The position numbers were made by a program, and so were the translations under genes. The notes under the pieces are model-generated. The model searched no databases and was not told where the DNA came from. It saw only the letters and a program-made list of their open reading frames with translations. This document shows positions 19,801 to 63,358 of a DNA stretch of 64,000 bases, one piece after another (the stretch's first letter is position 1; every line of letters begins with the position of its first letter). This stretch comes from Setoptus koraiensis. Its lineage: Eukaryota; Animalia; Arthropoda. The DNA lies in contig CM106585.1 of the NCBI GenBank assembly GCA_048013815.1, positions 11,346,001 to 11,410,000 of the forward strand, given 5' to 3'.

Positions 19801-22393
19801 GCGCCTGATTGAATCAGCAAAAAAGTATGTCGATCTCCACCAGAAACATTCATCGTATGAGCTACTTGATGTCAAATCTCACTTACGTCTAGCAGAGATA
19901 GCAAACAGTTTATTGAAACTAGCATCAAATGATCCATCAGTAATGGCTTGCAAAGGACTCACAAGGTACATTAATGAAGTGTTGCCAAACTCTGAATGGC
20001 GCCAGGAAGCTATAAGGCCTGCCCTCATAATGATTCTAAAACGCTTGGATAAAACATTCAATAGAATTGCAAAAAAGAATTGGGTCAAACGCTCTACCGA
20101 CTGGGAGGCAGCAAAGCAACTTCTGAAAGGTGCCTATCTAACATTCATTAAGCATCCATATATAGTTCATCTGCCTCACTTGAAGTCGCTGATTGGTTGT
20201 TGTCAGAACATCATATTGAACGATGGAATACCACAGGGACAATCTTCAACTGGATTGTTGCATTTGCCGGGCGTTGGCAGCGGTATCTCCAATCAGTTAT
20301 CAGTCGGACCTCATGTCATTGCGCCCTCATTAAGTGCGTCTGGGGCCACTGCCGGTGCTCTATTAAGCGCACCACCTACGTCTTTCTCTGTTTACAACAG
20401 TATGACCAACAGTTCAATCATAACGTCGCCAGGATTTGGACTAGTTACAGTTCGTCTTATTGCAATGCAACTTCTTCAAACCGGAGATAGTCAAACACTG
20501 GAAAGCTTCATTGGCACTAATATGAATACTCCAGACAAACTCGAATCACTCATGCTAAATATGATTTATCCGATGTGTATCAGGGTTTGTAGTGGTGCTA
20601 AAGAGGCTCCGAAACTGCGTCAATGTGACATAATGTACATACTCAATGTTGTTTTAAATCTATTAGCGCCTAATTCTGCATCAAGCAAAACTTCGTCTGC
20701 AGCAGCGACATCGCCCAAGTCAACAACAGACACATCGCAGTTCATTCTATCGAAAATAACTACAACTATTGGAAATACTAATACTGGGGCCACACTTGGA
20801 ATAGTGGGTGCTGGAAATGTTTCAGGCAATGTACAAGTATATCATCATCACGAAGGACTAAAAATAGGTTTCTTAGGATTGAAGATATTGTGTGTCTGTT
20901 TCGAGTCTCAGTTAGCCACAGAATGGGTAAGAATCTCACGTTGCATAAGAGATTTAGCCATGCAAAAGGGTCAACCGTGCGGACCGTTGTGGGACTTCTT
21001 AGATTTTGTCGTCACATATCGCTTTCCATTATTCGTACTTTTGCTACCGCTGATAAGGTGCCAGTTATCGCAAAAAGTGAAAAATGAGGCAACCAATGGA
21101 AACACAACTCATCAACTCAATAGTCAATTGATAGACGCTAAAATACAAGGCTGCACTCCGACTGTGTGCCGAAGCAAGTCCTTCTTGTTTGTGTCTCTAA
21201 CTGCAGAGCTGAGAATGCTCAAAGAGCACCTTATCAATCGACGTAGGGCTCTAACTGAAGGAGAACGATTTACAGTTAATGTGGGCCCAGCAGAATTGAG
21301 CTCACAACAGACATCTGCAGATCATTTCCATGCCTATCACAGACTGAGTGCTGCAATTGCATCACTTGCTAATCAGTCTCAAGGGAAGCAATCATCTGGT
21401 AGTGGAGCAAATCTAGAATCGGGACCAAGTAGCTCAGGAATCAAAACACCTGGACTTCCGAACAAGCTATGTCCAACTGACAATTCGCCGCCAATTGGAG
21501 GCGATAATTCATCCGTGACAGGCAGTTTAACAGGGGGACTGCTTAGAGTAGATAGTGTATGCCGACCACAACAACCCCGAAGCTCGGTGAGACTGTCATC
21601 AGCACAAAGTCGAGAGGAGGCACGCAGGGTCATTAATACCCTTTTGAGGCGCACCAGTTATCCTCACAACCACGTATGTTCAGTTGATACGAGCCAAGAG
21701 TCAAGCTCACCTAAGAGCCCAACGAGCAAAGGAACTTCAAAGAAACAAGATTCGCCACCTGAGATTTCAAACAACCACAATGGCACTGCCCAACGCGCGC
21801 CACCCGTCATTATAGATCCCACCCTGCTGATGGCCTCGTTTCCAATGCACCAGAAACACAACCCAGAGCCAAAGTTGCTAGAAAGGCTCATTCAAACGAT
21901 CGACAAAACAAATAGTGAGCAACAATCTATGAACCAAATGAAAAAATCTGCCTCCACTGTTGCCGGTGAGCTACCGTCAGCAAGCAGAGCAAGCCACCTC
22001 CATTCTGATTTTATTCCAGCTTCAAAAAGTGACTTTAGCGTCACAATAGAGGGTGACACAAGCCATAGCATGAAATTCAAGTCACCCGTGTCTAGCCATT
22101 CTTCAAGCACGATAGGTAGCGTAGCGAGAGGGCGTAGAATATCAGCCTCCATATCCCCGGCAAGTTTAGTACATTGCAGCAGTGACGGAAAGCATGCTCA
22201 TATCTATAAAGTGGGCCAAGGTATGGATTTTGAAACTTCTATGCAGAACGTGACGGGTTCCTTGCAAGACCCAACGCACACAATAAAACATCATCATGGC
22301 GTTATATCTAGGACAAAATTACCAGAGCAGCAATCAAATAAATCAATAGAAAAAGATACGGATGAGAAACCCAAGAATTGGATTCAATCATAG
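10874..22393 (+). CDS. unc-80: UNC-80 (NALCN channel complex subunit), 3839 aa, apparently intronless
   Basis: The N-terminus matches UNC80 motifs (PLPLQIFLWRQ, ETKLLYTLHWII). Further conserved blocks include YLDIAVLKCLF, ANFVHRCNRGQWPAWMK, RYQCWQRMEEGA..FKMAPP and RHFFERLTR. One uninterrupted 11,520 nt ORF. Confidence 0.95.
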   Translation: MTKRRKMFDEQNEDNDYVPLPLQIFLWRQANPFVKYLGKARGTAVLEQQEACKSYEKVIVQNILFGQSPSLTDAIKSIDRWRLIKISFPFVLQCCSALLCNRRNVNFDKLGSCETKLLYTLHWIIMDAAEECADSEGDSANASAVAAGVGVQSIADAVAAVTAASNANKRRLNQVATKATKGTTTPGCKPKQADSYLLPISSLATFIHYFAPIIDDLKRSNFLSSFRLENGAKIWEPLFAHQHPDIPCFTAQVRPKGELPKVRLIHDQLLTQQQQQNKQLGHNHVFGDVFLGVSASSREKCDYQRDINIESGSPLTRKASGRDKTLATYLDIAVLKCLFNSMWQEQGVDWALKFIINRLLDLQENFNQPMISRPRSKSLPNLFYTQDEDVKDETQSEQIDSQSASLDQRQNDDKPLDITYNDASEPSNELLSTSSYLNVTQTQDVSNNNNELAASGQDLLQTPKNSRRLSFSSGINTLANQIRKTSKRMKKSNEIMQNQNNSDIKTDRATLVSGRQRFLLGSFTSDDFNNKRIKKRDELKESLVNDKPYARRRSSSIDDLSSGQVIIPSEDIDHHNVRLVKSTEEQVSVVLKSSDAPNRITHPKITVTKQKFQDSIKKSSDPLNDMREDFLNDLPYVDDNDENSDLPYELKVSHMTRSQTVPRNISYFNMPIAESPGASNYVNQMGQLDLNVILKALHSISMRESICSIQVCDDLLTILVKLNNLDILKDHNHSNNQQQSSTVRDKDEKGNPRNILRCRNSTCEQSADKSPARASSLCNHNLFTDILLRLSRHMGCANDCSTETLASMTDNNKDHQKVQNLRVRLHSLLKHISRHNKIEFIEFMQDFVCNRPLQEVIDTYHSIFSFCREQHCVPQSMNLPVPATVHFLPTSASNAGLISQLAQQGLNSTVSSTSIAASATSGSSTAHGVKHQQTYQARDSGSIGSPRSDASSILGPTGQTDKVGQQSGANKQFGGYIGYANNFGSGFDVCQQNKSHQQQRSLESIIISHTFRPLINRISKITKELKLQENTSLYCDIRRFIASVRDSYGGTFRNVVLSALIDSAKLINSGHVRAQRQHLKYIINKNNVKAQQQQAYINSKMNNHESDDVNMSESPVAGQSNVSGAPCNDSAAEDATEPMPSVEQTQNDPSANRYMPEGFRIQSKAARLAGLDGSSAQELFMSPDESNQRAYSESNQHNNFGSMRFGSPKTSPSQGILSFSKAKKKFEDQFKLVFGKTTKLKPSADDDLADHSRRTSFADYANQQSGDDNYMLQGDFIGPETALNLHEQQLLFASTREGMTRFSFLMESCAPGNFLDAPLMAALLDLKSSVAVRAAIYFECANFVHRCNRGQWPAWMKLNVSIHRPSNSGTSASNGATRLGKSSSIQRSARTNTLMYRAAGKAFYAWAEAIGARLEELITTERQQAADSSLERANAPQKSSVSAGDDTSLQERFGSENGHLRNQELEQMNIDDEMMDKFSTQDRAGSAHSINNNVESEFLTQDPLDCDLFQDNICGSTSPFCLKVAACQLLLEITSFLRETYRYLPPKVARHVSARAGDKMAAIYDVSRAVTANRRWSMALSSLGFGQLPASLSAISANTGRQPGAHGGQASNVNDHPERRISFILHETNDENEQSSSSNTGTIQHTAPQTSTLSATGAVIDASVAAAQAAASAVASPLAAVSESDAIKKLATKRLSQSSASSSGVAATATSLLRSSGVIDSSSHRRKSIKLRRPNDRDRKTKFRPSIVQQDFDEEPESMNGPDSFNLIRRADSLRSRRKVSGISERSDTSERIGELSGDESTGNLSGEEQTQENIDQAEADESKIMSNMPWFRAIGMVNSSIDCACNHYPNCNANCYKVQQTMCKRLVSAIQSVYEDPDDDQGAAYAANLFDSQFGNLMNIGACTTGANLPGSGACNAAGQNFPSDTPNLNLDNRSEVDAGGKINDGAGKKRERKMKKLVGSNTMINSNSTQSNHLLTQIQSPSKRRVSAVSHDQHHNIMNFGQQAYLAAQGIAASSQPTNYSYDYGETPVNSCNGPQSGYIADAVKAFTIAKAKKHATARKAQEEAQMIKYIHNHVKTLLHCPMSSFLKGAIILQRPHFVDMIQFSWNLLLEDDQQLSRTAAVAFIISSVKCPAEASKILLEELESDDASRKLAAINKFYVIWDARYQCWQRMEEGAYIHFKMAPPSIEFTLPSPKIAQESKPVVDPPWLPRKTSKVEEVTIGQDQTLQRSFVTATKTRRKQQIELVSRALKEKHNKLREEREEYHITSVPVNYHAAFEPTLSHSTNEEMEGGGVDDDPQSENRTLHHMKMAHALFPSCLCQGAVVMINLLEDSRVTYEGSAVYEVASKVIWYCLVEDSSLFLRHFFERLTRQNQNTIFQVLRRLIRFMPRLPPQAAYTLYNYLIGFIIFYIRCPMENSQKLISDTLSVLCLVVPSVYGLFLKDLKQILRKEQCDHNLLITANVPSAKKIIIHGSDSSGIPSQFPIDEATQFYHILTDSLEFFGIEKSKQNEYFLVDARTNQMHNLHSFVRDYYSFKRSQHPQLQLVNMEPTKAFEILQKQALTNQFLEFGKVLMSLSIVKSPYLAVQRVLFLHEELMKLPTFPRKALDTNFHLFRGPLGHQVLSMDRLHKICWVRLVARMFELTSNFFLQLSDLHLFLNVVSGVFVLHCEEASVTRLCLATFIDAAYQFKNIFATEGFMPIMPTIVRIYSNHQNNELLCRSIEFVCKQFYIMHRKPFLLQLFGSVAPLLNTESMKGSNQSHDPHRVSATAFFKLLKSLEEGFKDRLDILELVDAEKPLKAIDFCYQQDKEAIEILDIISLCVTVTAYASDSPRSTQMLIILEAIIPLYMKHLQASSSKKSGRQGHKDELHKIQSISICIRTLIVNCEGLTRTFSGPQKSIDLRGSSIRRGQQSKMNANSPQMDANDDAQTGPSKSGRHARRLSSDEGVITRAEFIIPRDTLLNLVAEFLTMSTARLIESAKKYVDLHQKHSSYELLDVKSHLRLAEIANSLLKLASNDPSVMACKGLTRYINEVLPNSEWRQEAIRPALIMILKRLDKTFNRIAKKNWVKRSTDWEAAKQLLKGAYLTFIKHPYIVHLPHLKSLIGCCQNIILNDGIPQGQSSTGLLHLPGVGSGISNQLSVGPHVIAPSLSASGATAGALLSAPPTSFSVYNSMTNSSIITSPGFGLVTVRLIAMQLLQTGDSQTLESFIGTNMNTPDKLESLMLNMIYPMCIRVCSGAKEAPKLRQCDIMYILNVVLNLLAPNSASSKTSSAAATSPKSTTDTSQFILSKITTTIGNTNTGATLGIVGAGNVSGNVQVYHHHEGLKIGFLGLKILCVCFESQLATEWVRISRCIRDLAMQKGQPCGPLWDFLDFVVTYRFPLFVLLLPLIRCQLSQKVKNEATNGNTTHQLNSQLIDAKIQGCTPTVCRSKSFLFVSLTAELRMLKEHLINRRRALTEGERFTVNVGPAELSSQQTSADHFHAYHRLSAAIASLANQSQGKQSSGSGANLESGPSSSGIKTPGLPNKLCPTDNSPPIGGDNSSVTGSLTGGLLRVDSVCRPQQPRSSVRLSSAQSREEARRVINTLLRRTSYPHNHVCSVDTSQESSSPKSPTSKGTSKKQDSPPEISNNHNGTAQRAPPVIIDPTLLMASFPMHQKHNPEPKLLERLIQTIDKTNSEQQSMNQMKKSASTVAGELPSASRASHLHSDFIPASKSDFSVTIEGDTSHSMKFKSPVSSHSSSTIGSVARGRRISASISPASLVHCSSDGKHAHIYKVGQGMDFETSMQNVTGSLQDPTHTIKHHHGVISRTKLPEQQSNKSIEKDTDEKPKNWIQS

Positions 22394-24672: not shown

Positions 24673-25817
24673 TCAGTAAAATTGAACTCTTCTTATGCTG
24701 ATATTTCTCAATTTATCATTAATTAGGCAGTCGTAATCAATGAAATGCAAGAGACTCCCTGCAATGAAATTGTAATTGAGTTAATTATTAGTATGTAACA
24801 TATTAAACGTTATCACTAGAGACTAAAAGTCATAAGTCACACTGTACACTTACCCCAATTGAGGTGCTGGCGACAATCTGAATGATAGAATTTGACCTGT
24901 AACGGTAACACAAGAGTTTGGCCATCCTCAAACCTTAGCGTCATTTGCACCTCAGTTCTGTCCTTGTTCTTGTTCGCATCAAACCTGCTTGCCGACCAAT
25001 CGAAAGCGTATATCAATTGGTCGGTGTTGTGTGTCGACAAAGGAGCATTTTGGAAATATTGAGCCACATTTGTCTGCGAGGTTTTGCTTTCATTTTGCTG
25101 GTCATCACTAGTTGCTGATTGTGTACATTCGTAAAAACTGATATCACTACCCTGGATGGAGATACTTCTCAATGAAATTGATGGTTTGATTTTAAGTCGG
25201 CATTTGTAGGAACAATCAACCGAAAGTTTCAGAGTGAACTCATGGCCAAACCGTTGACCGTCTCTCTTGAAGTATATGGATTCGTCGCACCTTTCCTTGG
25301 ACAAAGATGGACTGTTGTTGCCGGAAGATATTAAATTACCACTATTGACAGCACTGGTGCTGGTTCGAACACTACTCGTTCTTTTAAAGCTACCGTAGCT
25401 AGAGCTTCGGGACGATGAGTGGTTGAAGCGCTTCTCGGTGGCACAAAATTCTTCTCGTTTGTCGTAGTAATCACTTGTCGTTGTTGTTGTCGTTGTCGTG
25501 TAACTGTCTAAATTGACGCCAATTGTTGTGCTCGGTCTTAGCCTGTGCGCTCTCTTGAATTCTAGCTGGCTATATCCGGCTTGGTGCACTTGATTTGCGT
25601 TACCTGCAAGAGGTTCTGCAGGCTGATGGCAATCCCTTAATAATTGCACTCGCAAACAGTCCTCGTGGTTGTTGTTGTTAGATTTTTCACATATTGACGC
25701 CGAGGCTGATTTTACCAGTGGATACTCCCGTTTTCTGTAAGCAGGCAACGGTGGGCTAAGTGAGATGCTTGAGGGAGCCTCTTTAGCAGTTGCTATTTGA
25801 AACTGTACTCTCATCAT
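24673..25817 (-). CDS. CNRIP1: CB1 cannabinoid receptor-interacting protein 1 homolog (CNRIP1/CRIP1a) with a long Ser/Thr-rich N-terminal extension; exons 25817-24854 and 24758-24673
   Basis: YFKRDGQRFG..TLKL..YKCRLKIKP and QVKFY..HLNWG resemble CRIP1a (FYKVDGQRFG..TIKL..YKVEVKIKP; QVKFY..HCQWG). The TGGG|GTAAGT donor and ttgcag| acceptor add GSLLHFIDYDC...QFY*. The first ATG is at 25817; an upstream exon is not excluded. Confidence 0.85.
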
Positions 25818-27641
25818 AACTGTTTTCTTGCCGTCGCACTTGGCGAGCCTTCTCTCCCGCACTTCAGTGAGAATATTGTCAAATAACTATTGTTGCTGTC
25901 CAGACAATTGTCTAACATGACCGTCTTCATTATAGCGACACTGTCGCGACAAGTTGCAAATTGTTTCATTTCAATCAGTTGCTTCAATTCAAAACTCGAA
26001 CGACGTCTCTTGCAGTTTTGAGCTTGGTAGTAAGTGCTGACAGACATAGTAATTAATCCATTTGAACTGTGTGTGTTTGTGTGTATCTTAGCACTCACTT
26101 ATGTGAAAATGATTTGTGGTAAGTGATAGGATAAAATCATCATTTTTGATATAGTTAGTCGATCCGAACTTGTTTATTTCACTCAATTCTCGAGCCATCA
26201 TTCGAGTTACCATGCAATCTGCTATGCGCTAATTATTCTTCTAAATCGATAAATTTCAGTCTTCTTCCCAATGAATGGTATTGTAGCTCATAGACTCTGG
26301 CAAAGACTCAGCTACGCAAAATGTGTTTGCAAGTATGTTTGTAAATAGCTACTGGGCCAATGTAAATAGGCTGGCTCTCATGTGGCAAGAGACTAGGCAC
26401 AAAAATAAATGGAATTGTTACACAATGTTAATTGAAGACGAAGACGAGTGAGGCTTCGACTCAAACGGAGTCACATCTAAAAGGTATCTCATGATGTCTG
26501 TCACACACAAATTTGTTTTCATACAGATACTATGACGAGAAGTTGGCTATCATTAGTGACATAACTAAATATGTGTACGTTCAGTAAATATAACGCTAAT
26601 TTCGCGCTAATAGAGATCAATTTATCAATACTTGGCCTCGTACACAACTGACTGTGGCATACAATTAGCAACTGACAAATCTTCATTCAAAAACAAGATA
26701 TTTATTATTTATAGTGGAGCGAACTACTGTTATCTCCTCATAATTCAATCACATTGGAGCTTCTCAGTGAACTCCAAACTCTCAAAGAAAATCTTGCGAA
26801 AGCTTCAGTGTGATCTCACAAGAGTTCCTTTGGTTTACAGTCTATGACGTACTTAACGTCTCTCGAGGCTTGCCATTTCTTCTCGTATCGCACATAGTCG
26901 GCAATAGGCAATTGGTGAAAATAGGGATGCGATATATCCGCATGAATTCAGGCCAATAATAACGACAAGTACTGCATTAGTGCAGCATGCACTAGCGATG
27001 TTCCAATCAAGAGCTAAAGTGTAAAGAACTTTTTTTTTGCTACAATGGTGTCGGTTGGCATATCTCATCGACAATAATCGAGTGATTCGTCGCTAGAAAC
27101 TATGTGGAGACTCTTCCTCAAAATACAATAAATGTTTCCCTTCTGCATAGTCAAACTGACCCGGATTGCTGCTGGGAGTGATCACCTTTTTTGTCGCTCC
27201 ATGTATATACATCGATGAATTGATTTACGGGGCGGCTATCATCGTCGGAATAATGCTATCTAATGCTCGGATTTGATTTAAATAATTGCAATGTGATGTC
27301 GACAGAAATTGTCAAACAAAATCATCCAACTGCAACTGGATCAATCTCATTCTATTCTGTCGATCTCATCTCATGTCCTCGGTCTGGTCACCTCCAAGTT
27401 TCAACACTTTTATCTGGGTTGTATCTACTGGCTCATTCAAGTTTTGTGTGTCACTCGGAACTCATCATGTCCAAGGGGAACAACAAAATATCGCAACACC
27501 TTTACAATGATGATAATGACTTTTTTCCACTTCATACTCTCTGTATGAAGAATAACAATTTTTGAAATGCTGCGTGATTGGGAATTAATTCTTTAACTAC
27601 ATTTGAAATATTCTATGGTTTTCACGCTGCCCATCTACTCG

Positions 27642-27649: not shown

Positions 27650-27745
27650 GAGCTGTCTCTTTCGTTGAGAGGCCACATATTGGAGATCCTTTTGTTTGGT
27701 TTTGTCTATTTTCAAGCATAGTCACAACTTTTGTCGATTGACAAC

Positions 27746-30019
27746 ATGGCTAGTTTTAACGCGCATTCGGTCGTTATCATCAGCTATTTATTGATTTCAA
27801 TTGTACAATTGCATAATTGTGTAGTAATTTGTACTGCAAACTCCAATCAATCAACAAGTCAATCAAGTCTGATCACAGCCTCAAAACATGATACATTCAA
27901 TGCGCAAGATGTCAGTGAACAAACTTTAGATGATTCTCATGCCAGAAATGGCCAGCAACTTGCCTCAGCACCCTATCAACTCGACAGTCATGCAAATTTC
28001 GTGTCACCAGATGGACAACTCATAGCCTCTGTGCCGGCCAGTATGCTTCAGGAGATGGCCTCCGGTTCAAATGATGACCCTGTAAGACAACCGTCGGAAA
28101 GTTTCAATCTCAGAGAGATGCTCGATCAATTTTCTTCCAACATAAGACAGAATGTAACTTTTGCACCATCGTCTTCAAATGGCCCACCTCCCACTGTTGT
28201 TGAATCTTCCCAGAATGTTATGGTTATAGACGGTGAAAATGTTCTGAGCACGTTGGCCAATAATCATCGACTCAAACCGCAACCAATTAGAAACAAGGCG
28301 GCAACAGTGATCAATCTGATGCCTATGGTTCCAACTAGAAGCTCAATAATTGAGGTAGCGGCGGAAAATTTCACAATGCGCAAGATAAGCGAACAAGCAA
28401 ACATATTTTCCATGAGACTTCTCAGTCAAATAGACCAAGAGCAATTGTACGCGAACAATTTAATTGTGGCCCCATTTGCTGTCTACCAGGGTTTGGCATT
28501 GTTGTTGTCGGGTGCTCAAGGCGAAACTGCTCAACAACTCGATCAGCTTTTATTAGGCAGCGAGTCCACGTACACCGAGCTGGCTAAACAATCGTCGTCT
28601 TTGAATCAAGATAGGCCACGTCTTATGGTTTCCTTGAATGAGATTATTAAAAATTTGAGACAAAATTCAACAAGAAACAGTAACTATGGCCTATCTGTAC
28701 AACAAAACACCCAATTACTCAAGCCACTAATAACAGCCAACCATCTTCTCATTTCGCCTTCTACCGAGATATCAAATGAGTTCAAGCATATAGTTGAAAA
28801 TTACTACGACGAGGTACCATTGACGAAAATGGAAATTGGCAGTTTAGAGTCGGTGCTCAATGTCAATAATTGGATCAGATCTGTCACCAATGGTATCATA
28901 CCGAACATTTTGAATAGGAAGACAACGTTTGATGAATTCAATGTGATGACTCTATTAAGCACTGCGTGGATGCAACAGGAATGGTTGGACAACTTTCAAA
29001 GAGTTACATCACAAACTAAACAGTTTGTGCGCTTGAAATCCGGTAGAGGTGTTATAGCCACTACCGGCCAACCGCAACAGCAATCTAGTTCGCAGCAACC
29101 TGTCAAGGCACCAATTCTTATGGAATTCGTCGATGATAATAGACAATCGCATTTTGTCGAGTACATAGTATCGCAACCAAGCAAGAATATTAAGCGATTC
29201 AAAGTAGAGGTGGCATCAACGCTGAAGGTTGACGTCGTTGAGGTTCCCTTCAAGTATAGCGATTACAAGATGGTGGTTCTTATGCCACAACAGCTCAACA
29301 ATCTGCCAATCATCACCAATAATGTTGAGGGAGCCCAATCGACAAATCAGGCTTCGTCGGCCACATCTAACAGTGTTGCAAATGGAGGCTTAACTAAACT
29401 GATACAGTTACTTGCCAATAATCCAAGGGATTCTCTCAGAGACATTTTCAATTTGATTGATCCAGATATGCTCACCAAATCCATTTATGACAGTCAGCAA
29501 TCGTCGAGAAAATCTAATTTTTCCAATTTCGTTGTTAGAGACGACGAATTGGATGACAGCGATGCCGATTCAAACGATTATGCCAGGGTGCCTAGTGGAA
29601 TAAAACTCTCCATGCCACTGCTCAAAACAGAGGCCGACTTAACTCTATCGGCATCACTCAATAAGCTAGGTATTACCAGTGCACTCGATCCATATCAAGC
29701 AAATTTTATAGGCATTAATGGTCATCCATTCAACTACTACAAGCTGCATTTGAGCAAGGTGCTGTTCAAATCGAATATGAATATAGATGAGCGAGGCATA
29801 AACTATGATAAAACCATTCAAACACTCGAGGCTCTGCGATTAGCGGCCCAAATGGACCGGAATCGTATAGCCTCTTCACTGGAGCCGGCCGGCGGTTTAA
29901 ATCTGCCCAATATCGAAGAGTTCAGCCTGAACAGACCCTACATGTATTTGATCCGCGACTACAAAACAAAATTGATATGGTTCGTGGGCACCGTCAGAGA
30001 TCCATCACTCGGGATGTAA
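27746..30019 (+). CDS. Large secreted serpin-fold protein, probably non-inhibitory (757 aa), intronless
   Basis: Signal peptide after the first ATG (27746). Serpin motifs: NLIVAPFAVYQGLALLLSGAQGETAQQL, VNNWIRSVTNGII, VVEVPFKY, FSLNRPYMYLIRD..LIWFVGTVRDP. The hinge reads ERGINYDK instead of EEGTEAAA. Confidence 0.88.
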   Translation: MASFNAHSVVIISYLLISIVQLHNCVVICTANSNQSTSQSSLITASKHDTFNAQDVSEQTLDDSHARNGQQLASAPYQLDSHANFVSPDGQLIASVPASMLQEMASGSNDDPVRQPSESFNLREMLDQFSSNIRQNVTFAPSSSNGPPPTVVESSQNVMVIDGENVLSTLANNHRLKPQPIRNKAATVINLMPMVPTRSSIIEVAAENFTMRKISEQANIFSMRLLSQIDQEQLYANNLIVAPFAVYQGLALLLSGAQGETAQQLDQLLLGSESTYTELAKQSSSLNQDRPRLMVSLNEIIKNLRQNSTRNSNYGLSVQQNTQLLKPLITANHLLISPSTEISNEFKHIVENYYDEVPLTKMEIGSLESVLNVNNWIRSVTNGIIPNILNRKTTFDEFNVMTLLSTAWMQQEWLDNFQRVTSQTKQFVRLKSGRGVIATTGQPQQQSSSQQPVKAPILMEFVDDNRQSHFVEYIVSQPSKNIKRFKVEVASTLKVDVVEVPFKYSDYKMVVLMPQQLNNLPIITNNVEGAQSTNQASSATSNSVANGGLTKLIQLLANNPRDSLRDIFNLIDPDMLTKSIYDSQQSSRKSNFSNFVVRDDELDDSDADSNDYARVPSGIKLSMPLLKTEADLTLSASLNKLGITSALDPYQANFIGINGHPFNYYKLHLSKVLFKSNMNIDERGINYDKTIQTLEALRLAAQMDRNRIASSLEPAGGLNLPNIEEFSLNRPYMYLIRDYKTKLIWFVGTVRDPSLGM

Positions 30020-47742: not shown

Positions 47743-49044
47743 TTACCGATCCGTAATGTAAAGACTACAAAATTCAAAAGCGTTCACAAACATCTTGTTC
47801 CAGGGGCTCACGTCGATACGCTTCTCGCCGGTTTTCCACTCTGGCAAAACGTAAGGCCACTGCCACATTTGGGTGCATCTTTCCGGATGAGGCATCATGG
47901 CCAAATGTCTGCCATCGGTGCTGCATATTGCAGCCACAGCAAATTTGCTTCCATTTGGATTTAATGGATATTGTTGTGTTGGCTCCCCAAAGTCGTCAAC
48001 ATATTTCATGGCGATACGTTCGTCTTGCTCTGCTTTATATTTGTCCTTGCCACTGAGCTCAAACTTGCCCTCGCCATGAGCCACCCAAACACCAAAACAA
48101 CTTGACTGCATCTGTTTAAGCATAATAGAATTAGTGTTAGCCTCAATTTTGACCGGTTCTTTGATATTTTTGAGCGAGGCCTCCTTGCTGAAATTACAAT
48201 CTAGACCAGAGTGACTCGCCAGGGCCATTTCTATGAGACAAACCAACAGTCCTCCGTCGCTGATGTCATGGCCGGCAGTGCAAATTCCGTCTTTAATCAG
48301 TTGTTGAACCATGTTAAAGCCAGATTTCAGCAGAGAGGCATCGTTGATTTCGGGCGCTTCATCCACGGCCAGCTGGCCAAATGATTGAGCCAGAGCTGAG
48401 CCTCCCAATCTTGGCTTAAAATGCTCTTGAGCGTTACAATTGTGCGACATATTCAGCCAGATTAAGCGACTAGTTGGCAGACACTCCATAATGGGTGTCA
48501 CTTTACATCTGATATCGGGCACCGGCGCATAGGAGCTTATAACCAACGTACCAGGCGATTTCACTATCTCTTGTTCGGGCCTCTCACTGTCTAGCTCATC
48601 ACTACTTGATGATTTTTCTGATCTTTCGGGTGCTTTAATCAGGCTAGAGTTATTCCTATCCACTGTGGCCATCATAGACAGAGAATCTTTGCCACCGTCA
48701 ACGGCAATACCAAGCTCTGACATTAGCTGACACATGGCCTGGCAAGCGTCCACCAGCTTGGCCCCTTCGCCCGGCAACTTGGCCGCCCACATCCAATTAG
48801 CGCTGCACTTGACATCCTCCAAACAGGTGACTACACAAAACATCATGTTTGTGAGAGCCTCGGCAACGCTCATGTGTGCGTTTGCCTTGGGACTGAGCAG
48901 GCCCTTGATCGGTTGTTCGCCAATTGATGTAACAGAACCTCGAAAATCGAAATGACTCAGCAATATCAGTCCATAGTCACCGATTGGCGTATGCAACGGG
49001 CCCAAACATTGTTGGCCGGCTATCAAACCGGTGACACAACGGAC
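47743..49044 (-). pseudogene. PFAS: 5'-truncated, internally deleted phosphoribosylformylglycinamidine synthase (PFAS/FGAMS) fragment
   Basis: RCVTGLIAGQQCLGPLHTP, GEQPIKGL, DVKCSANWMWAAKLPGEG, VDGGKDSLSM, GHDISDGGL, WVAHGEG, YPLNPNGS and MPHPER are present. The N-terminal about half and the glutaminase segment with the GVCNG nucleophile are absent. There is no natural ATG. The frame is open over about 1.3 kb. Confidence 0.8.
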
Positions 49045-50536
49045 CACTTCGCGGAAGAAAAGTTCAGCATCCTCGTCTTTACCACCGCCGAATCGGGGAA
49101 GATCCGAAAGCACCAGGGTTGGGTTCTGACCTAAAGCGGTAACTAGGTCACTGACCGCTGACTCACAAGGTAAACCTCCTAGGTCGGACACTCAGAATAC
49201 GCCCACTATAGTCTTTTTGAACTCTCCAGTGTACCCAGAACAAGAAAACGCTAGTCTCATGCTCAACTTCGGCCAAAAAAATTCTAAATTTTTCTTGGGA
49301 TTTTCTGAAATTAGACCTTGTCAGAGAGATTTACACTTGTTGTGTTCATGTTTACATCGGCCTTATTATCGATCGTATTCCTACGGGGTCTTGACATGTT
49401 CAACTTGAGCTTGGACTTCGATGAACCACGCTCTGCTACCAAAAATGTCGTGCCTAAGGAGCAGAGTATGTAGTTTATACCTCGGGCAGCGACGTTTATG
49501 CGTTGGATTCAGAATACCCTTCGGTACGGGCGTGCGGGAGTGAACCGCGGTGAATATTAGATGGTGAATATCAGAAATGGCCGAGCGGTAACCTAACGCG
49601 AGGCACTGTTTGTTTTACCCTGTGTATATACGCTAGCAAGTGACTTTCCTCGGGATGCGTTATGTGTCGGTAGAATTGTATCGAATAAGCGTGATATTAT
49701 AGAGGAAATCAGGCTGGAATTTTACACCGAAAGAGATTGGCGGTCCGAGGCAGATTTTGGTATAGGAGTCGTTGTATATGACAATAAATGAGTATCTCAT
49801 GGAAACTAGGTCTGCATTTATTTCTATGCCTTGGAAAGGCGAAGTCTATCGACAAGTGTGTTCGTTAATGCGCTGCCGTTGGTGCTGTTTTGTTAAGTTC
49901 GGAAGTCACCGACTTGTAGTTGAATCTGAGGCAACGAAGATTCTTGGTATGGGATGTGATATTACAACTTAGTTAGCCTCGAATACCCGATTGTATCGGT
50001 GGATACGTACAGCAATGGTGTGACTGAGTAGGTAACAATATATGTGAATTATCTGCCGAAAAGGTCCGTTCCTTTGAGGCAGTTCTTAGTGTTGATTGGT
50101 TGGTGTATCAGTTTGCATTTATGTCAGAATTTCTGCATTGGAATAATAAGCGGGGGTGTCGTGGTATTTGGGTTTCGAGCAACGCTAATTAGCGGATTTA
50201 CTGAATTTTATTGGGTACATGTATTATATCGTTATATGTTTTTCGAGTTATGTCTTACTCCTGCGTGTCGATAATCGGTACTGATTCCTAGTCTCCTTTT
50301 TGGGATCCAACTTATCACGACAACTTGAAAAGTTGTTAGTCATCCTCTTTTGAGTCTCTATTCTTAATTTCAACCGTCGTCTCGGCGCCAAAGCATTGCG
50401 TTATCTGTGTTTGTTATGGTCATACGCGCTCCTTGTGTTGAGCAGTGGCATGGTCGTATCCGCTCATGGATATCCGCGCGGAGGGGCGTGTTAGCTAGAC
50501 CGGCTATGTGCTACCGATGCCCATCGCGGCATCACA
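49045..50536 (-). mobile_element. Putative truncated Ty3/gypsy-like LTR retrotransposon: short LTR (about 50391-50536), PBS-like TGGCGCCGAGAC (50390 downwards), about 1.2 kb leader, gag N-terminal fragment
   Basis: On the minus strand the element begins TGTGATG. TGGCGCC follows about 145 nt later. LPRFGGGKDEDAELFFREV resembles gypsy/Arc-type capsid starts (F.G...D...F). The composition differs from the flanking CA-rich DNA. I saw no second LTR, TSD or pol. Confidence 0.5.
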
Positions 50537-55830: not shown

Positions 55831-56327
55831 TTAATTGTTTGTTGGGGCTTGGGACATCTGATAAGTTCGTATGGTATAACGAGTGAACATGGCGATTGAC
55901 ATTGTTGCCACAAGTCCTGATGGCATGAATTTCTTTGATTTTAGAAATCGGGGTAGCATCATAGCCCCCAACAGGCCAGACGCGCCATAAGTCAACCAGA
56001 AATTACTATTGTCCATGACATTTATAAGATTGTTAGGAGATTCATTAGAATAATTGTGAGAGGACTGAAGTGTTTTGCCGATTGCAATTTAGCTTTTCGA
56101 ATTGGAGTAACTTACTCTTGTGTGGCCTCTAAATAGCTGCCAGCACATATCAAGGTACCAAATGTCAAACCGGCAGCGAGTGATGGAACAGATTGAGCCT
56201 TGACATAACCGAGAATTCCTCCTGCAGCCACCAAGATTCCATAAGAAGCGCTGAAAATATCAAAAGGCATTCTGGTGCCAAGAACGGTGATTGCTGTCGC
56301 AGAGTTGTCGGAGGACGACGAGGACAT
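55831..56327 (-). CDS. TMEM14C: Transmembrane protein 14 family (TMEM14C-like, 128 aa); exons 56327-56116 and 56005-55831
   Basis: DIFSASYGILVAAGGILGYVKAQSVPSLAAGLTFG and RFLKSKKFMPSGLVA are joined by a 110 nt GT-AG intron in frame. Confidence 0.92.
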
Positions 56328-56854: not shown

Positions 56855-59353
56855 ATGCCCGTCATTAAAGTAAAAAGAGAAGTTTTGTTCGACCTGCTCG
56901 GGAAGCGATATACGGACGAAGAATTTAGCTCACTATGCTTCAGATTTGGTCTGGAACTCGAGGAAATCACCTCTGAGAAAAAGATAGCCGCTAAAGAGAG
57001 AGGCTTAAAAATATCGGACCTAGCATCCGACGAAATTATTTATAAAATAGATGTTCCAACCAGTCGAAATGATTTTCTATCCTTGGAAGGAATTGCACAA
57101 GCGATTAAGATGTTCGAAGGACTTCAACCACCACCTAATTATGTGACCAACAGATCCCGTGTAGAATTTCATGTTGACGCCCATGCTCTATCTGTTAGAC
57201 CAATACTTGTTGGAGCCGTTGTACGAGATTTAAAACTCACCCAAGATGTTTACGACAGCTTTATTGATCTTCAAGACAAGATACACCAAAATCTAGGACG
57301 AAAACGTTCTCTAGTGTCAATTGGCACACATGATTTAGATAAAGTTCAAGGTCCATTCTATTATACTGCTTGTCCTCCGAATGAGTTAAAATTCGTGCCT
57401 CTGAATCACACTGAGGAATTCACGGGACTAGAGCTGATGGATTTATACGCCGATAGCCACTTGAAACAATATTTGCCATTAATAAAAGATAAGCCGAGAT
57501 ATCCACTGATCTACGATAAAAACAAGGTCGTTCTTTCGATGCCGCCCATCATCAACGGGGACACCTCCAAAATTACTCTAGATACCAGAAACGTACTCAT
57601 CGAGATCACAGCAACCAACTTGTGGAGGGCTACCATAGCTCTTGACACCATAGTAACAATGTTGGTGAGTTCCGCAGCGGCACAGAACAAGTATCAGGCT
57701 GAATCTGTCACCATATACACTGGCTCCGAGGAAAGAGTCACTCCCAATCTAGACTACTACAAAGCAACTGTCGATAGGGATTATTTCAATAAGAGCATGG
57801 GTGCCGATTTGAGCGGCAAAGAGATTTCCGAACTCCTTCTGAGAATGGGTTACAAGGCTAAATCTGAACGAGACAGCATATTGATTGAAGTTCCACCTAC
57901 GAGACACGATGTCATCGATAAACAAGATGTTATGTCTGATGCGACTACCGCCTATGGGCTCGATAATATACGCGGAACTGTTACAAAATCTTGGATCATA
58001 CCAACACAGAAAAGATTGAATAAGTTGGTCGACGCACTTCGCCTGGAAATTTTAGCCTCTGGCTACACTCAAGTCCAAAATTCAAACAAATGCTCCAAAG
58101 AACTAATCTCAGCAACAATAAGAGACGGGGATGAGGTCGATAAAGCAGTCATTCTTGAGGATACACGCCAAGTAGCTCGAACAAGTCTCATACCTGGTAT
58201 TCTTCAGAACATTCAATTAAAACCACCTGTATGCTTACCTGTGAAATTATTCGAGATTGGTGATGTATATCTCAAGGCTGCTGATGATTCCAAAGCGAAA
58301 CACGAAGTTCGTCTTGCGGCCGCTTTCTTCAATGACAAAGGATCAGGACTTGAAGTAGTCCACGGATTGCTCGACAGAATCATGAAACTTTTGGGGATAC
58401 CCCACACTCACGGTACTGACGTTGGTTATTATTTGAAGCCTACTGATAGGGCATTCTTTCTCCCTGGGAGATGCGCATCAATCATCTGCAGAGGTAAATC
58501 AATAGGCTACATGGGTACTGTTCACCCTGAAGTCGTCATCAATCTCCAATTAAAATCTGTGTGTTCAGCATTTGAAATTCGATTAGAAGAAGCTTTAAAC
58601 AATATAGATAGAATAGAAGAAATTATCAATAGAGGGGACATTCTAGAGTTCGGTTCTACCGCTTTTGCTGTTGATAATGAAGCCGAATCAACGGAGAGGG
58701 GAATTGAAGATCCATTCAATAAACTTACTGGCAGCCTTCGTGAGGAGATGAGACAGTGCGGCTACACTGGAGCTTACACTTTCACATTATGCTCGGAAAA
58801 CCAGATTTCAACCATGATACAAGACGAGAATGGGCTCAATGATGCAATCATAGTTCAAAATCCAAAGTCGTCAGATTGTCAAGTAGCTCGAACATGTCTC
58901 ATAACTGGTTTGCTCTTAACTATCCAATCGAACTCACATGTAGCCCAACCTATAAAAATATACGAGGTTGATGATGTAATTTTGAGGGATGATCGATATG
59001 ACGTCAGAGCGAGAAACGAGCGTCGCGTAGCTGCTGTCATTTATGGTAGAATTGCCGTCGAACTTGAGCATATCAAAGGATTGTTGCAAAGAATCATGCA
59101 ATTCTTGTCGATACCTCACACTGACAACGCCGACAACGAAGGTTATTATTTGGTGTCCAGTGATAATGGATTATATCTCACTGGAAGTTGCGCATCCATT
59201 ATGTTTCGAGGTAAAGCCATAGGTTATATAGGTACTATCCACCCCGAAGTCATTGATAACTTCAAACTCAAAATGCCCTGTTCAGGATTTGAATTTCAAT
59301 TAGAAGAAGTTTCCAAGCTTAAGCGACATAGAATCAATAAAAACTCTTTGTGA
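56855..59353 (+). CDS. FARSB: Phenylalanine--tRNA ligase beta subunit (cytoplasmic) with a tandem duplicated C-terminal domain, 832 aa, intronless
   Basis: MPVIKV, FGLELEE, YKIDVPTSRNDFLSLEG, FIDLQDKIHQNLGRKRSLVSIGTHDLD, SMPPIING, B5 segment VPPTRHDV. Two successive ART.LI.GLL...HPEV..F modules follow. Confidence 0.93.
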   Translation: MPVIKVKREVLFDLLGKRYTDEEFSSLCFRFGLELEEITSEKKIAAKERGLKISDLASDEIIYKIDVPTSRNDFLSLEGIAQAIKMFEGLQPPPNYVTNRSRVEFHVDAHALSVRPILVGAVVRDLKLTQDVYDSFIDLQDKIHQNLGRKRSLVSIGTHDLDKVQGPFYYTACPPNELKFVPLNHTEEFTGLELMDLYADSHLKQYLPLIKDKPRYPLIYDKNKVVLSMPPIINGDTSKITLDTRNVLIEITATNLWRATIALDTIVTMLVSSAAAQNKYQAESVTIYTGSEERVTPNLDYYKATVDRDYFNKSMGADLSGKEISELLLRMGYKAKSERDSILIEVPPTRHDVIDKQDVMSDATTAYGLDNIRGTVTKSWIIPTQKRLNKLVDALRLEILASGYTQVQNSNKCSKELISATIRDGDEVDKAVILEDTRQVARTSLIPGILQNIQLKPPVCLPVKLFEIGDVYLKAADDSKAKHEVRLAAAFFNDKGSGLEVVHGLLDRIMKLLGIPHTHGTDVGYYLKPTDRAFFLPGRCASIICRGKSIGYMGTVHPEVVINLQLKSVCSAFEIRLEEALNNIDRIEEIINRGDILEFGSTAFAVDNEAESTERGIEDPFNKLTGSLREEMRQCGYTGAYTFTLCSENQISTMIQDENGLNDAIIVQNPKSSDCQVARTCLITGLLLTIQSNSHVAQPIKIYEVDDVILRDDRYDVRARNERRVAAVIYGRIAVELEHIKGLLQRIMQFLSIPHTDNADNEGYYLVSSDNGLYLTGSCASIMFRGKAIGYIGTIHPEVIDNFKLKMPCSGFEFQLEEVSKLKRHRINKNSL

Positions 59354-59552: not shown

Positions 59553-60042
59553 TCAGTACCCACCGTTCACTTGACCGCCACCACTGCCATAGGAGCCAGA
59601 AACCGGACGTGGACCGCTTCCGTAACCAGATTGTATTGGTCTAGGTTGATGATAACCAGCATTTCCGTAGGTTCCCCCAGTCGGTATCGGTGGTCCATGA
59701 GAGGGGGCGTAACCTCCACTTCCTTGGAATCCAGGCTCATCTATATCGGGTAACAGAGGTGATTCAGAAACTTTAGTTTCACAATCACTAGTAGCACAAA
59801 TATACAGTTTATGTTTTCATACTTACAGCAATCACACCTGCACGCTGGTTGAACGGGACCTACACCACCTCCATGGTAGCTGTTAAAAAATAGAATTTAA
59901 GATTTAGTTGATTTGGTATTCAAGTTGCTATAAGGGAATGAAAACTCTTTCATAATCCTAGTTGTGAGTACCTCTTGTGAGCCTGAACAGCCGCTACCAA
60001 GACCAACAATAGTATGGGTAGGATCAACTTGATTGAAGACAT
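59553..60042 (-). CDS. Small secreted Gly/Pro/Tyr-rich protein (103 aa) with a CRCDC motif; exons 60042-59972, 59879-59827, 59740-59553
   Basis: Not in the ORF track. Signal peptide MSSIKLILPILLLVLVAAVQA. Canonical AAGAG|GTAC, taacag|, T|GTAAGT and atatag| junctions all keep the frame. Mature part: HKSYHGGGVGPVQPACRCDCYEPGFQGSGGYAPSHGPP...GGY*. Confidence 0.85.
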
Positions 60043-61130: not shown

Positions 61131-62196
61131 CTAGAAAGGGCGCGCAGTCGGGCCTATTCTGGTGACATGTTTCTTTTCGCCAAACTGGTCTGTCTGCATC
61201 CTCAGATCATCACATACTTCTACCACAATTCGTGGCTGAGATTCGGTGGCCTCATGAATCAGATGCGCTTTTCCTGGAAATGAATTGGTTTAAAGAAAAA
61301 GTATTGATTATTAGTATATTGATCCTCTATGAAACAGCAAACTGAGAGTCAAAATTTTACTTATTTTAAACAATAATCTTTTTTTTTTGGGGTGGGGGCA
61401 TGTAGAACTCACCAGGAACTAAGTTTGCTATAGCTGAAATCAATTGAACATCTATACAGGGTGAATTTTCTGTGACTGGTTCCCAGCCGACTGGCGGTGA
61501 AGCAGGAGGCGAGATGAGAAATTGTCTGGTAGGTTTAGGAGGCAGTAGATAATTTGAGGAGCATGAGCCTTGATTGGATTTGATCATTCGAACAGCATAG
61601 CATTTAGATGCTGCACCAACTGCAAAATTATTATAGTTAAGACGAGCCGCCTCGGCCTGCTCGGGTGTGCTGAAATCTATGCGAATTCTTCTGAAACTTC
61701 TCAGATATCTGAATGTTATATTGGGGTCGTAAACATTAAATAAAGATTCAAATTGCTGTTGAAGTTCGCGGTTAATAAACAGCCTACTGTCCACATTTGT
61801 AACAACCAATATATTCGATGATTCTTCTCTTTCAGAAAAATTTTCAATTTGCGAAACATCGTCATCAATATCATCAGTCTTTAAACTACTGCTGTCAGAT
61901 AGTTCCACTTGGGCATTGAAACGACTCTTGATGTAATCCTCACAAGAATCCATAAAACAATCGAATGTATTGCTATCCGAGTGTCTTTCTATATTTATAC
62001 ACGGGCCGACTGTTGTGTCATTAATATTATTGCCAGTGCTTGATTCATCCATACACATATCATGAAGCTGATTTGATATCTCCTCCATGGCTAAGGAATT
62101 AGGAAATATTGCATTTGTCTGTTGCTGTTGGCCAACGGGAAACTGTGTGGTACCATCAGAAGGTGAAGTGTTAGGGGGCGAATGATGGCTAGTCAT
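61131..62196 (-). CDS. RCAN: Calcipressin / regulator of calcineurin (RCAN, sarah-like), 308 aa; exons 62196-61413 and 61273-61131
   Basis: RRM-like FRYLRSFRRIRIDF and the FLISPPASPPVGWEP signature. The CCTG|GTGAGT donor and ttccag| acceptor add HEATESQPRIVVEVC (PxIxIT-like) and terminal TARP. Confidence 0.93.
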
Positions 62197-63358
62197 TTTC
62201 ACTCACGGCTGGATGTTAAATTAAAATGAATTCATCAATCTAGACTATGAGCATAGCATCAGTTTATTCGGGCTATGAATTGAGTTCCTGATAGCTAGGC
62301 GTCTTAAACTAAATTACACCATATTTTTTGAGAAGAAATGGATTGCCTCAATATCGATGGATGCCTCAAAAGAAATTAAGCATACTCCAATAAAATCGTA
62401 AGTAAGTAAGACTGATGCAATTTCAACAAAAAATGAGGACTGCAGTCGTAATGCATTTGAATTCGCTTGATAGTTGGAACATCAACTAAACTGGCGCCAG
62501 TTTCGAACGTACTTAATCGAATAGAATTAACAGAATGTCTGATGGAATTCTATATTGCAGAGCCTACATCAGTTAACGAACCAGTTTATACCGATAATCA
62601 TTCACCAAGACATCATATACGTTTTCAATCTATTTGAGCACATTCGACAACTTTTATAAGTTTACCGAGACATCGTTAGGTGGTTAGAATAAAATATACG
62701 GTGTACACAATTTGCAGCTCTATATATATCATATTTTCAATATCGATATCCATCTAAATTATACTTTCATGAAAAATAATCGAGAGAAAAGGCTGGCCGT
62801 TTGTAGAGACTCCCAAGGAATCTGTTTTCATTTAATATCGAACTAAGACTTTTAATTATGTTACAAAGAATTTACTTTGAAGATATTATAGATTCAAGCA
62901 ATGGACATTGGTGCGATATCTCGATCTCACAACTCCATGTAATACGCTTGAATTTCGATTTTGTCTCAAGAAAAGATTGACCAGGATTTGAGCGATTTGC
63001 ATGGCGATGAAACAGTAAGGCCTGTCGTTATCTCCTTCCGTCTATTTGGTACATCTGATATGTTCTTTGCTTGACTGCACCAGGTGCTGGAGTACTATTC
63101 GAAAGTCCCCTTGATTCGGAAATCCATTGCGCAAATGTATTTGGTTCAAATTAGGTAACAAACAGTCTGGTATGGAGAGAGTTTATAAAACTTTGGCCTC
63201 TTTCTTTCCCCATGACCCGTTTACAATATTGCGACATTTCTTCTGATTACAGAATCAATTGTTTAAAAAGTGTTCTAGTTACATAAACATTCAACATAAA
63301 TATAAATCTATATACAACAGCAACAATAATCAACAATGACAGAAAAATTACAATTCCT

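Follow-up and report, generated by a model that had tools for sequence, protein, structure and literature searches.

A 64,000-nucleotide stretch of the genome of the small, plant-feeding mite Setoptus koraiensis (assembly GCA_048013815.1, contig CM106585.1, positions 11,346,001 to 11,410,000 of the forward strand; hereafter the window) carries FARSB, the gene for the beta subunit of phenylalanyl-tRNA synthetase (PheRS), in a form whose product ends in two catalytic-like modules (CLMs) instead of one. The gene is a single intronless open reading frame (ORF) at 56855..59353 on the + strand, with 832 codons uninterrupted by a stop, and its product of 832 amino acids (aa), closed by a stop codon, has a predicted mass of 93.5 kDa. 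Pfam places B1, B3/4, and B5 domains on this ORF, followed by PF17759, the PheRS beta CLM, in two stretches, and the two copies are 44% identical over 198 aa (BLASTP, E 2e-55). This agrees with an earlier note on this DNA, which described a FARSB-type PheRS beta with an in-frame tandem duplication of its C-terminal CLM. A FARSB with two CLMs is apparently unique, and, to judge from the sequence comparisons, the CLM has not previously been seen duplicated in the databases searched. The explanation favored here, to which we give about an even chance, is a tandem duplication, in frame and specific to the lineage of this eriophyoid-type mite, that took in the last ~237 codons and in which the upstream copy became trapped and copy 2 serves as the main CLM. 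The features of the gene, with the two CLM copies scanned separately in Pfam for their scores, are as follows:

56855..59353, + strand: complete FARSB ORF (human PheRS beta 3l4g_B matched by phmmer, E 3e-156).
56855..57121, + strand: B1 domain, aa 1-89 (Pfam PF18262, E 3e-27).
57248..57619, + strand: B3/4 (editing) domain, aa 132-255 (Pfam PF03483, E 2e-12).
57767..57958, + strand: B5 domain, aa 305-368 (Pfam PF03484, E 1e-14).
57890..58600, + strand: duplication unit 1, comprising the end of B5, the native connector, and CLM copy 1 (DNA alignment).
58010..58591, + strand: CLM copy 1, aa 386-579 (Pfam 118 bits, profile positions 15-214 of 214).
58592..58714, + strand: inter-copy segment, aa 580-620, a decayed second B5 end (homology to aa 350-387).
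58601..59310, + strand: duplication unit 2 (DNA alignment to unit 1).
58709..59308, + strand: CLM copy 2, aa 619-818 (Pfam 147 bits, profile positions 10-214 of 214).
59309..59353, + strand: basic C-terminal tail (aa 819-832) and stop (matches the tail of the single-CLM orthologue).

An N-terminal B1 domain, B3/4 and B5 domains in canonical order, and positional orthology (see below) place the gene in the FARSB family, whereas members of that family have one C-terminal CLM and ~570-620 aa and this protein has two CLMs and 832 aa. The standard FARSB of ~590 aa with a single CLM, from which the earlier note started, is borne out by the relatives and by the human structure. Over their whole length, residues 1-577 are colinear with human PheRS beta (3l4g_B; 44% identity, E 3e-156), which as 3L4G chain B is also the top Foldseek match of the model (E 2e-62). 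Residues 611-817 form a separate second structure match (8s8b_C, 158 bits). It should be noted that this chain C of PDB 8s8b is the best match to copy 2 alone and that the entry, released in 2025, bears the title 'Phenylalanyl-tRNA Synthetase Domain Swap: evolutionary advantage?'. A literature search found no paper on this 'domain swap', and the entry may be relevant to CLM plasticity.

The nearest named relatives of the protein belong to the eriophyoid mites Fragariocoptes setiger and Aceria tosichella (~50% identity), as expected from the mite origin that had been presumed for this DNA. The closest sequence of all (P0001), at 65% identity, is 600 aa long with one CLM and lies on contig L001 of the Logan assembly of SRR33593474. 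Gene order on L001 matches that of the window (TMEM14, FARSB, a Gly-rich gene, and calcipressin), where the genes flanking FARSB are:

56112..56327, - strand: TMEM14-family exon, the upstream synteny marker (92% identity to its counterpart at the sister locus).
59567-60040, - strand: Gly-rich gene that follows FARSB and contains two short introns, ~90-110 nt each, with one donor read by eye as GTAAGT (counterpart at L001 3805-4278).
61366..62202, - strand: calcipressin, the downstream synteny marker (88% identity to its counterpart at the sister locus).

The shared gene order and the 92% and 88% identity of the neighbors indicate that L001, from a closely related species (hereafter the sister), is the positional orthologue. 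On L001 the next gene begins 143 nt past the FARSB stop, which leaves no room for a second CLM, and the two-CLM state is absent from this syntenic orthologue. FARSB and calcipressin also appear to be co-located in L001 and in contigs of P0029/P0292, P0014/P0296, P0026/P0304, P0031/P0310, and P0013/P0313, which suggests that their linkage is old within the mite group.

Relatives were taken from 5.8 billion clusters and 120 were listed, 105 of them 570-625 aa long. No two-CLM protein was found among the 120 listed relatives, those exceeding 800 aa being mostly fish EF1-beta fusion models together with one moth model. Further, a profile of 55 CLMs was run against 1.84 billion representatives, a search in which a two-CLM protein would rank at the top; none was found in the top 150, the best score was 337 bits in a single stretch, and the entries matching in several stretches were short or fragmentary. 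P0051, P0052, P0144, P0185, and P0245 were considered as two-CLM proteins and rejected, since they are single CLMs split by an insertion. A search with aa 516-832 for junction-bearing fragments or closer relatives returned nothing above 43% identity, and no exact matches of FARSB and ten other window proteins were found in the collection. The survey of other mites suggested in the earlier note yielded single-CLM relatives, and among the sequences searched the arrangement is confined to that of the window. A literature search likewise found no report of internal catalytic-domain duplication in PheRS or in any aminoacyl-tRNA synthetase.

The duplicated unit measures ~711 nt, or ~237 codons, with 57890-58600 repeated as 58601-59310. 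In DNA, 426 of 692 aligned bases are identical between the units (62%, and 65% within the CLM part), so the similarity that had been noticed at this level is real, and all four internal indels (12, 12, 3, and 3 nt) are multiples of three. The repeat limits first proposed, ~58001-58591 and ~58709-59308, describe the CLM copies well and understate the extent of the duplication. In particular, what had been taken for a plain linker of ~40 aa is instead a degraded repeat of the B5 end: aa 580-620 align to aa 350-387 with a score of 44, compared with 19.4 +/- 3.8 for shuffled sequences, none of which (0 of 5000) reached 44. By this homology the duplicated block consists of the B5 end, the connector, and the CLM. 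It ends just short of the basic C-terminal tail, of which there is a single copy, downstream of copy 2. The inter-copy segment retains 3 of 15 strongly conserved B5-end columns, evolves with a ratio of nonsynonymous to synonymous divergence (dN/dS, or omega) of ~1 by the Nei-Gojobori method (NG86), and has a predicted local distance difference test score (pLDDT) below 50 at aa 594-618 in AlphaFold2 (AF2) models. These values show a duplicated B5 piece that, judged by its substitutions, has decayed neutrally into a linker, and in the models this piece is probably now disordered.

Copy 1 lies in the same frame as, and between, the N-terminal domains and copy 2. When the sister CLM was evolved neutrally in simulation to the observed divergence, ~0.1% of runs were free of stops, which argues that selection has preserved the open frame downstream of copy 1. 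No in-frame GT..AG pair that would excise either unit was found, the lone GTRAG donor in 57700-59353 sitting inside copy 2; a splice event restoring the standard length, which the earlier note had allowed for, thus lacks the donor and acceptor that it would need. FARSB appears to be read through as one 832-aa product in which both copies are translated.

Selection on the parts of the gene was gauged with pairwise NG86 values against L001, which are crude estimates, and with branch omegas from three-point estimates. The neighbors are strongly constrained (TMEM14, dS 0.40 and omega 0.11; calcipressin, dS 0.63 and omega 0.13), as are the N-terminal 344 codons of FARSB (dS 1.31, omega 0.12). Omega is 0.43 for copy 1 against the sister CLM (dS 0.89), 0.43 for copy 2 against the sister CLM (dS 0.65), and 0.58 for copy 1 against copy 2 (dS 0.75), with a bootstrap 95% confidence interval (CI) of 0.39-0.87 in the last case. 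Values of 0.12 in the N-terminal part and 0.11-0.13 in the neighbors, as opposed to 0.43-0.58 in the CLMs and ~1 in the linker, indicate that the relaxation is specific to the duplicated part. Resolved by branch, as had been proposed for each copy, omega is 0.54 for copy 1 (CI 0.32-0.92), below 1, and 0.63 for copy 2, with a CI that spans 1. The estimates show what appears to be relaxed yet purifying selection on both copies.

The copies differ in how far they have departed from the family. In Pfam, copy 1 scores 118 bits and copy 2 147 bits, and the CLMs of seven orthologues score 149-177. Identity to the sister-species CLM is 51.5% for copy 1 and 59% for copy 2. In the maximum-likelihood tree, the branches measure 1.56 for copy 1, 0.66 for copy 2, 0.08 for the sister, and 0.24 for the common stem of the copies, and dN is 0.27 for copy 1 and 0.16 for copy 2. 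Of 67 CLM columns, each conserved in at least 90% of 104 orthologues, copy 1 retains 46 and copy 2 retains 50, compared with 64-67 in other mites. Copy 1 is without the F..LC signature of the hydrophobic motif-1 strand and the A-R-N-E-R turn, has four residues deleted from the NPKT.EFQ loop, and retains KLFEI, G.E..HGLLDRIM, and P-G-R-C-A. Copy 2 retains TFTLCS, NPKSSDCQVART, NPKS..CQVART, and A-R-N-E-R and is altered at the start of the G-F-E..H-G-L-L-D-R helix and in the P-G-R strand. The long N-terminal motif-1 helix with its conserved N-K-L...L-R signature is kept by both. These comparisons show copy 1 as the more degenerate and copy 2 as the more canonical CLM.

The motifs that the earlier note named for each copy are present or lost as it described. 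Its proposal that the copies have decayed in complementary ways holds only as a description of motif clusters and is not borne out statistically site by site. The 67 columns divide into 39 kept by both copies, 7 by copy 1 only, 11 by copy 2 only, and 10 by neither, so that losses in the two copies coincide above chance (odds ratio 5, P 0.007). The columns lost in both mostly hold different residues in copy 1 and copy 2. This pattern points to constraint that may have been relaxed in both copies rather than to labor divided between them.

Divergence at 4-fold sites bears on the age of the duplication. It is 0.38 between the copies, 0.36-0.44 between either copy and the sister CLM, and 0.30-0.42 between the two species for neighboring genes. 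The duplication thus dates from about the time of the species split. The two copies group together in the best tree (support 94-95 / 85-88), a grouping that comes with a warning of long branches, and the approximately unbiased test rejected neither the joining of copy 2 with the sister (p 0.083) nor that of copy 1 with the sister (p 0.107). Counts of shared-derived residues are 7, 4, and 1. It is possible that the duplication occurred just before the species split and then collapsed in the sister lineage.

The unduplicated N-terminal part of the gene has also changed quickly, with a branch of 0.44 in the window lineage vs 0.007 in the sister; the corresponding branches for calcipressin are 0.11 and 0.046. 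Of 111 N-terminal columns conserved in at least 90% of orthologues, 11 are changed here and 0-6 in other mites, and 5 of these 11 losses fall in the B1 motif P-A-N-R-Y-D-L-L (aa 68-75, 57056-57079), which reads P-T-S-R-N-D-F-L. Moreover, 4-fold divergence over aa 1-344 (56855-57886 vs L001 1860-2897) is 1.03, compared with 0.30-0.44 in the flanking genes and the CLM region. Silent-site divergence in the N-terminal part is thus 2-3 times that of the neighbors while omega stays at 0.12. Part of this acceleration looks mutational or local rather than relaxed.

In PheRS, two alpha catalytic modules and two beta CLMs meet in a core through a four-helix-bundle interface, and this (alpha-beta)2 core has been described as conserved throughout the known cytosolic and bacterial forms (PMC3275996). 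The CLM itself copies the structure of the class II catalytic module, is catalytically dead, and has been kept for assembly (PMC3275996). Two AF2 monomer runs were made, with an alignment covering copy 1 in one and copy 2 in the other. The helix and strand order of a CLM was predicted for both copies, even for the copy without alignment depth in a given run, and copy 2 reached a pLDDT above 90 when given its alignment. Both copies are accordingly modeled as folded modules, and the models are compatible with constraint that is relaxed rather than absent.

Under the favored explanation, the duplication would have left two redundant CLMs in one beta chain. The upstream module (CLM1) would have taken the first damaging changes, and the downstream module (CLM2) would have become the working one, supplying the canonical role by pairing with the alpha catalytic module and lending its motif-1 helix to the four-helix-bundle core. 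Loss of CLM1 would then be barred, since any stop or frameshift within it removes the essential CLM2, and CLM1 would persist as a folded in-frame module, weakly constrained by fold, by solubility, and perhaps by contacts with B5 and B1. This would act as a ratchet: in the reverse case, with CLM2 damaged first, a single stop codon could erase the damaged module without a trace. Some of the fast evolution elsewhere in the gene may be compensation for altered geometry. A trapped upstream copy accounts for the rate asymmetry between the copies, for a Pfam score close to normal in copy 2, for a frame that has stayed open, and for a linker that evolves neutrally.

Several observations weigh against this explanation. 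The fast N-terminal part (0.44 vs 0.007) would be equally explicable by a redundant paralogue. The CI on the omega of the copy 2 branch (0.26-3.4) is too wide to pin its value down. Copy 1 keeps 46 of the 67 conserved columns, including G.E..HGLLDRIM, KLFEI, and P-G-R-C-A, which are altered in copy 2, and it may therefore have a role beyond that of a spacer. The native connection to B5 belongs to copy 1, which geometrically favors copy 1 as the canonical module. Residues that are otherwise invariant, such as the E and L of G-F-T-E-A-L, are gone from both copies, and the alpha-beta interface may have been remodeled as a whole. Finally, the packing of CLM1 against CLM2 is not confidently placed by the AF2 monomer models (predicted TM-score, pTM, 0.52-0.54).

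That both CLMs are structurally engaged, whether in an alpha2-beta enzyme with a single editing module or through divided contacts that make the pair obligatory, is possible and on balance rather unlikely. The more probable form, itself unlikely, is subfunctionalization at the level of the domain, in which both CLMs are needed because each keeps part of the ancestral contacts; CLM1 could, for example, hold those with B5 and B1 and CLM2 those with the alpha catalytic module, neither being dispensable. Losses in different motif clusters (7 columns kept by copy 1 only and 11 by copy 2 only), a pairwise omega below 1, two open frames, and two modules predicted to fold are all consistent with such a division, for which the tyrosyl-tRNA synthetase (TyrRS) of double length offers a precedent (PMC8319005). 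Divided contacts sit poorly with the 10 columns lost from both copies, a coincidence above chance, and the asymmetry in rate (1.56 vs 0.66) is better fitted by a main copy and a passenger.

That the genome holds a canonical FARSB at another site, with the window gene a redundant paralogue that is drifting or newly functional, appears decidedly improbable. This arrangement would account alike for the tolerated duplication and for the gene-wide acceleration, which is specific to this gene (0.44 vs 0.007 in the N-terminal part and 0.11 vs 0.046 in calcipressin) and extends to conserved columns, with 11 of 111 changed in the N-terminal part and 17-21 of 67 in the CLMs compared with 0-6 in other mites. 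The locus, however, is the positional orthologue, and the FARSB-calcipressin synteny is common to several mite contigs. Moreover, the N-terminal omega of 0.12 equals that of the neighbors, the raised synonymous divergence looks partly mutational, all domains are intact, and eriophyoid genomes are streamlined with few duplicates (PMC7738191).

An altered quaternary structure, in which one beta chain fills both CLM positions to give alpha2-beta with a single editing module instead of (alpha-beta)2, is very unlikely. Both copies do keep the motif-1 helix with the N-K-L...L-R signature of the four-helix bundle (PMC3275996), and the disordered linker of ~40 residues joins them. Equivalent positions in the core would nevertheless predict strong constraint of a similar degree on both, and the copies are relaxed (omega ~0.5 vs 0.12) and unequal; nor did AF2 give a confident CLM1-CLM2 arrangement (pTM 0.52). 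Least credible of all is a standard-length product made by splicing out one unit, or a tandem structure that is an assembly error: the units do resemble mutually exclusive exons in sharing a length class and a frame, but nearby introns of ~90-110 nt have GTAAGT donors (by eye) and no donor-acceptor pair excises a unit, an intronic copy would neither stay open (~0.1% of simulations) nor show omega below 1, and a difference of 36-38% of bases between the copies excludes a repeat-expansion artefact or a duplicated haplotype, in line with the low likelihood that the earlier note had given to an artefact.

The window is gene-dense and intron-poor, which fits the description of eriophyoid genomes, in which 84% of genes are intronless (PMC7738191). 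UNC80 (10874-22393, + strand) is a single uninterrupted ORF of 3839 aa, and integrin beta (3883-6243, - strand) is one of 786 aa. An ORF of 762 aa at 27731-30019 (+ strand) has an N-terminal extension of ~220 aa followed by a serpin domain that Pfam reports in two stretches, and is about twice the usual serpin length. An ORF of 482 aa at 47743-49191 (- strand) carries only some of the domains of FGAR amidotransferase (PurL-type) and may belong to a gene that is split or has several exons. An internal duplication suspected in a CNRIP1-like ORF (24837-25862) was not confirmed.

Two CLMs kept open under selection imply that an extra module can be tolerated by the PheRS core or put to use in it. 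The duplication is recent and a single-CLM orthologue exists at the same locus, which makes this a directly testable case. If both CLMs are engaged, the gene would represent a recent, datable rebuilding of the quaternary core in an otherwise invariant heterotetrameric synthetase and a natural constructive neutral ratchet acting on a housekeeping enzyme. In intron-poor genomes, an ORF of this kind is at risk of being truncated or split by annotation pipelines.

Compared with the human-type FARSB, the mite gene has the same domain order of B1, B3/4, B5, and CLM and differs in its second CLM and decayed B5-end linker, which bring it to 832 aa vs ~590 aa; both of its CLMs are unusually diverged from the FARSB family consensus. 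Functionally, the closest parallel is the TyrRS of trypanosomatids (Leishmania major and Trypanosoma brucei), a double-length pseudo-dimer whose halves have degenerated differently (PMC8319005); it too is an essential synthetase duplicated internally and in tandem within one chain. In TyrRS, however, a whole class I enzyme is duplicated, the duplication replaces a homodimer and is clade-wide, and both halves are experimentally required. In the mite FARSB, by contrast, the duplication involves only aa ~345-582 (the B5 end plus the CLM), so that what is doubled is a class II-like, non-catalytic module within a single subunit of a heterotetramer; it is seen in one lineage and is without statistical complementarity between the copies. 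Like the mutually exclusive tandem exons of arthropods, the two units are tandem, same-frame, diverged coding copies; unlike such exons, they have no flanking introns or splice sites and are read as one ORF. The ancient CAM/CLM pair of PheRS arose by the same kind of event, repeated once more at the mite locus. Whereas that split is universal and lies on separate subunits, the mite duplication is recent, with a 4-fold divergence of 0.38 between the copies vs 0.30-0.44 between the two closely related species.

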